64,000 bases of DNA, taken from the IMG/VR virus record IMGVR_UViG_3300036715_003906, positions 186,001 to 250,000 of that record. One strand, written 5' to 3'. The translations under genes and the position numbers were made by a program. Each line of letters starts with the position of its first letter. Position 1 is the stretch's first letter. Below the pieces are notes generated by a model. The model saw only the letters and a list, made by a program, of their open reading frames with translations, was not told the DNA's origin and did no database searches. Positions 18,854-18,929 of the stretch are shown one piece after another.

Positions 18854-18929
18854 CGCGGGGGGGACGAGTTGAACGTCCGTACCCGAAGACCCGAAGGCCC
18901 GCGGTGCTCTACCCTTGAGCTACCCCCGC
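18854..18929 (-). ncRNA. tRNA-like RNA with a cUUCGg tetraloop instead of an anticodon loop
   Basis: GCGGGGG/CCCCCGC; GCTC AAGGGTA GAGC; CCG..GGCC TTCG GGTC..CGG; GGACG TTCAACT CGTCC. Confidence 0.75.

Follow-up and report, generated by a model that had tools for sequence, protein, structure and literature searches.

Phage tRNAs can evade the anticodon nucleases of their hosts through changes in the anticodon loop (eLife 2023, PMC10264068; Nat Commun 2024, PMC11555353); such tRNAs are encoded in phage arrays, combine an altered anticodon arm with a complete tRNA body, and decode, replacing the host tRNAs that have been cut. YrlA, a Y RNA of bacteria and phages (RF02553; RNA 2014, PMC4201824), mimics tRNA without decoding: it has D and T arms, its acceptor-like stem is closed, and on the anticodon side the helix opens into a stem that binds Ro and is built from the 5′ and 3′ ends. 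In mitochondria of the alga Vischeria, the tRNA-X1, tRNA-X2 and tRNA-X3 genes are conserved while their anticodon arm varies freely and is loopless in some strains, from which their authors conclude an anticodon-independent function (bioRxiv 2026, PMC13060386). Also tRNA-shaped and processed like tRNAs, without being ordinary adaptors, are mascRNA (MALAT1, RF01684), a eukaryotic RNA whose anticodon arm is reduced, and the tRNA-like domain of tmRNA, which has no anticodon arm, carries G3.U70 and is charged.

Here we describe a tRNA-shaped gene of 76 nt at 18854–18929 (− strand) of the window, the 64,000-nt stretch of DNA analysed here, that we would place among the non-decoding tRNA mimics. Like the nuclease-evading phage tRNAs, this element lies in a phage array and has an altered anticodon arm on a complete tRNA body, and resistance to loop-cutting enzymes is expected of it as of them; unlike them, it has no anticodon and cannot rescue translation. 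It shares with YrlA the D and T arms, the absence of decoding and the occurrence in a phage, but its topology is the opposite, with the acceptor end open and the anticodon side sealed, and its assignment as YrlA or another Y RNA was rejected, there being no YrlA match at 18700–19060 (E up to 10). The tRNA-X genes, where the anticodon arm is dispensable, appear to be the nearest published parallel that we found, although they are organellar with truncated arms, whereas the arm here is lengthened and tetraloop-capped, and no sequence relation between them is known. Neither the mascRNA nor the tmRNA model matches at the locus, and a tmRNA-type or alanine-accepting mimic was rejected on account of G3-C70 and G73, in place of G3.U70 with A73. 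Ordinary tRNA pseudogenes resemble the element in array location, tRNA origin and loss of decoding, but are not expected to keep all stems and tertiary bases or to arrive independently, in unrelated phages, at a helix capped by a tetraloop. Full-text literature searches returned no account of a capped anticodon arm in phage tRNA-like genes, which is not proof that none exists.

A tRNA-shaped gene in the tRNA array of a jumbo phage

The window corresponds to bases 186001–250000 of a 251,474-bp IMG/VR virus record, whose length at a CheckV completeness of 53% indicates an uncultivated jumbo phage as its source; the G+C content of the phage is ~68%. Its tRNA array occupies 14.3–25.7 kb of the − strand and comprises, by ARAGORN, a tmRNA and 32 tRNA calls (33 genes in all), of which two, the element among them, are reported as 'tRNA-???'. 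Most ARAGORN calls in the window are backed by Rfam, and an additional tRNA-Leu(UAA) lies at 62035–62110 (+). Along the − strand, the gene order around the element is papain-like protease, tRNA-Thr, tRNA-Thr, tRNA-Gly(UCC), tRNA-Gly(GCC) (19065–19137), the element, an HNH endonuclease ORF and tRNA-Cys(GCA) (18243–18315). The HNH ORF (18346–18825, −) lies outside the RNA, starting 28 nt downstream of it, and matches Pfam HNH_3/HNH (E = 6e-5 and 2e-3, neither reaching its curated cut-off); its GC3 of 0.65, compared with ~0.93 in the phage's own genes, marks it as a recent mobile insertion with foreign codon composition. No promoter or terminator consensus was found near the element, and the array therefore looks co-transcribed. 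Genes for a CCA-adding enzyme, RtcB, RNA ligase or peptidyl-tRNA hydrolase were not found in the 251-kb fragment, which says little for a record that is ~53% complete.

The element itself was delimited by an Rfam tRNA match, an ARAGORN call and a cloverleaf minimum free energy (MFE) fold. RF00005 (tRNA) matches 18854–18929 end to end (45.3 bits versus a gathering threshold of 29, E = 1e-8), with model positions 1–71 matched and a 16-nt insert needed in place of the 11 bases that the model has at the centre of the anticodon arm. ARAGORN reports 18853–18929 as 'tRNA-??? (tcgg)', and the MFE fold (−39.7 kcal/mol, z = −2.8) accounts for 84% of the ensemble; folding with flanks yielded no significant extra structure of the kind that a larger structured RNA would give (z = −1.0). 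The acceptor, D and T arms, which an earlier sequence-only reading of this DNA had described as perfectly paired, are confirmed as intact by the Rfam match and the MFE fold, with stems of 7, 4 and 5 bp. The 5′ strand of the acceptor stem, GCGGGGG (18923–18929), pairs at all seven positions with CCCCCGC (18855–18861), exclusively through Watson–Crick pairs. The D arm (GCUC/AAGGGUA/GAGC, 18906–18920) has a 4-bp stem and a 7-nt loop with the elbow-forming GG, while the T arm (GGACG/UUCAACU/CGUCC, 18862–18878) has a 5-bp stem and the loop UUCAACU, unlike the GGUUCGA-type loops of the other array tRNAs. The variable loop has 4 nt, and the discriminator is G73 (at 18854), followed by a single C with no encoded CCA. 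All bases of the tRNA core are present, namely U8, A14, the D-loop GG, U54-U55-C56, A58 and G53-C61, as is A9 beside U8.

A closed 22-nt arm (18883–18904, −; CCG-C-GGGCC-UUCG-GGUCU-U-CGG) takes the place of the 17-nt anticodon arm, exceeding a normal anticodon stem by roughly four pairs. It consists of 3 bp (CCG/CGG), a C.U mismatch, 5 bp (GGGCC/GGUCU, including two G.U pairs) and a UUCG tetraloop (18892–18895) closed by C-G; the extended helix capped by UUCG that had been proposed is thus indeed closed, if less regular than that description implied. There is no 5-bp anticodon stem with a 7-nt loop, nor U33, an anticodon or a purine-37 context. The element cannot decode, and the earlier claim of a non-decoding RNA stands. 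Arm stability alone is unexceptional for so G+C-rich a composition, since 6% of shuffles fold equally well (p = 0.06). Overlooked in the sequence-only reading was a perfect 8-nt tandem repeat within the arm (2 × CUUCGGGU, 18881–18896, −), which runs from the tetraloop along the 3′ strand of the arm into the first part of the variable loop; a repeat of such length arose in 48 of 20000 shuffles (p = 0.002). The imperfections of the arm coincide with this repeat, pointing to a slippage mutation. Deletion of one CUUCGGGU unit does not regain a normal tRNA, leaving 18 nt versus the 21–22 needed, which suggests that the loop had been sealed before the duplication, if a duplication happened.

Other unusual genes occur in the same array and elsewhere in the window. 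A candidate full-length YrlA-type Y RNA at 22646–22780 (−), inside the array, combines T and D arms with a terminal stem and an acceptor-like stem that is closed (29.7 bits versus an Rfam gathering threshold of 69; E = 1e-4 locally), and an Rsr/Ro60 homologue of 578 aa is encoded at 57604–59340 (−; Pfam vWA_Ro60; PDB 2nvo, E = 6e-14), so that the phage seems to carry its own Ro–Y RNA pair. The second 'tRNA-???' (24544–24684, −) has a tRNA-Phe(GAA)-like 5′ half and, after position 37, a 57-nt insert that itself holds a degenerate tRNA 3′ half ending in CCA, with a better 3′ half following the insert; its sequence suggests a tRNA gene that was rearranged or duplicated in part. Three tRNA-like genes missed by ARAGORN (23388–23461, 21677–21759 and 25247–25319, all −) resemble tRNA-Sec in their 6-bp D stems and 4-nt D loops; one reads as Val(GAC), one as Ser-type, and one has a 23-nt anticodon arm containing UUUUCAU. 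The phage-encoded tmRNA (14303–14654, −; 116.8 bits, tag ANDNVALVALAA) marks the edge of the array, within which also sits the gene for the papain-family (C1A) cysteine protease (19685–20653, −). The ORF for the ribonucleotide reductase large subunit (2797–5580, −; 927 aa) may be extended at its N terminus or interrupted by an inserted element, its all-alpha domain beginning only at residue 381 and its barrel domain matching in three stretches.

Divergence in strain X4 and searches for relatives

Public runs from six studies contain parts of the region, and Logan contigs of four of these runs were compared over 18000–20000. The sequence is reproduced in the source sample, and one contig from an independent mat sample is identical to the window over 18730–19124. 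A freshwater run from an independent study, X4, provided a 1448-nt contig over 18852–19656 from a strain ~95% identical to the window phage, with 40 substitutions (three of them unlisted, which could fall near the 3′ end of the element) and 10 gaps. The X4 match ends at 18852, just beyond the 3′ end of the element and where the HNH region begins, implying that the HNH gene is absent or different in X4.

The X4 element differs from that of the window by four changes, each of them structure-neutral, and the closed arm is kept. Two changes, G16 to C and U19 to C (RNA numbering), are the only ones in the D arm and affect the two hypervariable positions of its loop; U41 to C turns G32.U41 of the arm into a G-C pair, and U35 to C converts the tetraloop from UUCG to CUCG, which conforms to the YNMG tetraloop motif as well. 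Of the two arms, that of X4 is the stabler (−14.1 versus −10.2 kcal/mol). The sequence-only reading had suggested a search for tetraloop conservation; in X4 the closed arm is conserved and the exact UUCG is not. For four random substitutions, the chance that all spare pairs and tertiary bases is 0.02–0.04, as estimated from this one diverged strain. With 4 substitutions in 76 nt, the element evolves faster than the four neighbouring true tRNAs (0/292, p = 0.002), among them tRNA-Gly(GCC), which is unchanged in X4; it evolves more slowly than the adjacent spacer (22/135 plus 4 indels, p = 0.03), though not significantly so than all spacers together (33/434). These rates and the structure-neutral changes argue for an RNA that is less constrained than a working tRNA, yet whose shape is being kept.

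More distant comparisons returned no further copy of the element. The cultured-phage collection held no near or distant DNA match to it, only the neighbouring tRNA-Gly being matched, and no near-identical record was found in the phage, IMG/VR and metagenome collections searched. An IMG/VR pattern scan for the element with any anticodon arm gave one chance match, and those for two strain variants and for the identical neighbouring tRNA-Gly gave none. Ordinary tRNAs were all that a single-sequence covariance model of the element recovered over the phage genome G002 and eight other phage records; the best match among these nine related or semi-related records was a tRNA-Gly(GCC), at 41 bits. A metagenome pattern scan yielded normal tRNAs and two unrelated long-stem tRNAs, L029 (4952–5031, +) and L033 (671–751, −), which have 7-pair anticodon stems and share nothing in their flanks with the phage; L029 is a bacterial polysaccharide locus. 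A fragment of a related phage (L006, 11883–11956, +) carries a tRNA with an 8-nt loop containing CUA.

No counterpart of the element was found in relatives at ~60% protein identity. The neighbouring protease has at least 375 relatives at 50–64% identity and none above 64%, many being on 300–490-kb phage contigs; those at 55–64% represent a large clade of phages of this size. In the relatives, the protease gene is not beside tRNAs and lies outside any array. For the neighbouring phosphoesterase, a relative at 73% identity (P0122) and its own 90%-identity cluster (P0241) exist, on contigs that end before the array. G002, a complete genome of 447,761 bp in the protease clade, has the order Gly(GCC), Gly(CCC), Cys versus Gly(GCC), element, HNH, Cys in the window, and its matching slot thus holds an ordinary tRNA-Gly(CCC). 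The acceptor pairs of the element (G1-C72, C2-G71 and G3-C70) look glycine-like, and its descent from a glycine tRNA is plausible on these sequence grounds.

Capped-arm tRNA-like genes in other phages and prokaryotes

We scanned IMG/VR with a pattern consisting of the tRNA D arm GGTAGAGC, CTTCGG 7–12 nt later and GTTCRA 13–20 nt later, a spacing that normal tRNAs fail because it would require C33 or pyrimidine 37. The scan returned 16 loci, nine of them full cloverleaves representing six distinct sequences, since four contigs (L046, L051, L055 and L057) are one phage, identical over 877 nt in four samples. As controls, two hexamers matched in composition and likewise barred from normal tRNAs produced 2 and 10 matches, not one of them a cloverleaf (9/16 versus 0/12, p = 0.003). 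Six loci (L045, L046, L048, L049, L054 and L059) contribute seven further elements, L054 having two, which score 46–64 bits as tRNA and sit in or beside phage tRNA arrays, several adjoining amber-suppressor tRNAs. In every scan member, the bases flanking cUUCGg pair and thereby lengthen the anticodon stem; the arms have 18–26 nt, and at the junction their pairing is interrupted by a mismatch, a bulge or a small internal loop. The second capped element of L054, detected by ARAGORN and folding, adjoins the first and has a 16-nt arm (6 bp plus UUCG). The loci span 35% to 62% G+C and share no nearby proteins with the window phage, and no conserved protein neighbour was found across the class members.

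Some of these loci have features of their own. On L054, an unrelated viral contig of 59.7 kb, three consecutive abnormal tRNAs (1534–1768, +; 48–61 bits) comprise one with a 9-nt anticodon loop, followed by two with UUCG-capped closed arms of 16 and 21 nt. In the low-GC phage L046 (3210–3416, +), an amber-suppressor tRNA (CUA) is directly followed by a closed-arm tRNA-like gene that ARAGORN mislabels as tRNA-Lys(CUU). The closed-arm tRNA-like gene of viral contig L045 (7549–7628, +) has G3.U70 and A73, that is, alanine identity.

An equivalent scan over 185,579 prokaryotic genomes gave, among the matches listed, 80 loci with at least six cloverleaves, at least five of which have closed or near-closed arms. 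Two Nonomuraea species carry an orthologous chromosomal tRNA-like gene (L084, 7055–7130, and L117, 5507–5580, +) whose 19-nt arm contains cUUCGg and whose acceptor and T stems show compensatory changes; the two genomes cease to be homologous at the 3′ end of this gene, as they would at an integration site. A verrucomicrobial MAG (L090, 6334–6405, −) has one with a perfect 7-bp arm and G3.U70 with A73. To judge from these bases, some class members of the L090 and L045 type could be charged.

The look-alikes in unrelated phages suggest, on sequence evidence, a recurring and undescribed kind of tRNA mimic, and recurrence in unrelated phages and prokaryotes argues that the design is no accident of the window genome. 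The window element has the full tRNA score, the capped arm in a continuous helix and the location inside a phage tRNA array that characterize the proposed class. Because arm length varies across the class, closure of the loop, rather than its exact geometry, appears to be what matters.

Competing explanations and a possible role

We consider the chances about evenly balanced that the element is a selected, non-decoding tRNA-body mimic of a recurring class. The tRNA body, retention of the arm in X4, lower divergence than in the adjacent spacer, recurrence and the empty controls count in favour. Against it are the faster change than in true tRNAs, the missing counterpart in relatives and the unremarkable arm stability, along with the tandem repeat, the damaged tRNAs in the array and the lack of a conserved protein neighbour for the class. 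The view of the sequence-only reading that the gene looks selected rather than decayed hence finds modest support in the structure-neutral X4 changes and the recurrence in independent phages, tempered by its evolving faster than true tRNAs. Much of the opposing evidence fits a young tRNA pseudogene, perhaps in a glycine slot, in which small indels, an 8-nt slippage duplication among them, destroyed the anticodon loop and which has had too little time for further decay, its hairpin being a by-product of G+C-rich sequence. The 4/76 versus 0/292 substitutions, the perfect repeat in the arm, its ordinary stability, the absence of the element from more distant relatives, the tRNA-Gly(CCC) that G002 has between Gly(GCC) and Cys, and the visibly broken tRNA-Phe-like gene at 24544–24684 are all as such a pseudogene would have it. 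It would not account for stems and tertiary bases being spared by all four X4 differences, one of which strengthens the arm, nor for the 18 nt, instead of 21–22, left on removing one repeat unit; the capped design, moreover, recurs in unrelated phages where control motifs yield none, and the Nonomuraea pair retains such an element with compensatory stem changes. On balance we regard a pseudogene as somewhat unlikely, yet as a serious and the main rival of the selected mimic.

That the shape is kept solely as a processing or DNA landmark appears improbable to us. It would serve as a site of RNase P or 3′-end cleavage, separating array transcripts and freeing the downstream mRNA, or else as a landing site for mobile genes, and the start of an HNH gene of foreign composition 28 nt downstream, the X4 match stopping exactly at the 3′ end of the element, the Nonomuraea homology ending likewise and the lack of a promoter or terminator consensus nearby are compatible with this; but the flanking true tRNAs on both sides would do equally well, X4 has the element while its HNH gene there is absent or different, and the sealed anticodon loop and recurrent UUCG caps are left unexplained. 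A role as an aminoacylated tRNA-like donor in a non-ribosomal reaction, as the sequence-only reading had entertained, is very improbable despite the intact acceptor stem and the alanine signature (G3.U70 with A73) of the class members L045 and L090. Among the synthetases that do not read the anticodon, the one for Ala depends on G3.U70, that for Ser on a long variable arm, that for Leu on A73 and that for His on G-1, whereas the element combines G3-C70 and G73 with a variable loop of 4 nt and A at −1. Charging is thus unlikely, and to our knowledge no anticodon-independent synthetase should charge the element by the known identity rules; nor was an aminoacyl-transferase gene noticed nearby. 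Scarcely credible is a decoding tRNA with an unusual loop, either a 5-pair stem with a 12-nt loop or a four-base anticodon: ARAGORN does force an 8-nt loop with anticodon 'tcgg', but the closed fold makes up 84% of the ensemble, U33 and the purine-37 context are missing, and the X4 arm is stronger still. An intron-containing tRNA (group I or bulge-helix-bulge) was rejected, as there are only 5 extra nt and no subset of these leaves a loop with U33; no intron family matched at the locus.

If the element is the selected mimic that we propose, its predicted product is an L-shaped RNA with a full tRNA body and a sealed, over-long anticodon arm. RNase P, the 3′ processing enzymes, the CCA-adding enzyme and the proteins that bind the elbow or the acceptor end do not need an anticodon, while an RNA without the loop neither pairs with codons nor is a substrate for enzymes that cut or modify the anticodon loop. 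The RNA would be transcribed along with the array, excised like its neighbours by RNase P and 3′ processing enzymes, and given CCA by a host enzyme. It would presumably stay uncharged, pair with no codon and offer no loop to anticodon nucleases, acting solely via proteins that read the tRNA body at its elbow or acceptor end. The likeliest use, along the lines of the decoy suggested in the sequence-only reading, is as a putative stable competitor or decoy for a host factor that binds tRNA, such as a tRNA-targeting defence enzyme; the abundant cellular tRNA pool that any decoy faces argues against this use. More broadly, phage arrays in many lineages may carry anticodon-sealed mimics, of which the element would be one, as uncleavable decoys or inhibitors of tRNA-targeting immune enzymes that recognize the tRNA body, a generalization that we put forward as speculative and distinctly unlikely.

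Why phages carry tRNA genes is a long-standing question, and replacement of the host tRNAs that defence nucleases cleave is a recent answer. A tRNA body without an anticodon cannot provide such replacement, which would imply that the tRNA shape serves a second purpose during infection. Should the class be real, a full tRNA score together with a capped anticodon arm would be a signature by which to search for it, annotation of such genes as Lys, Arg, Glu or 'undetermined' tRNA would be wrong, and its members would provide a natural set of RNAs for tests against tRNA-targeting defence systems.
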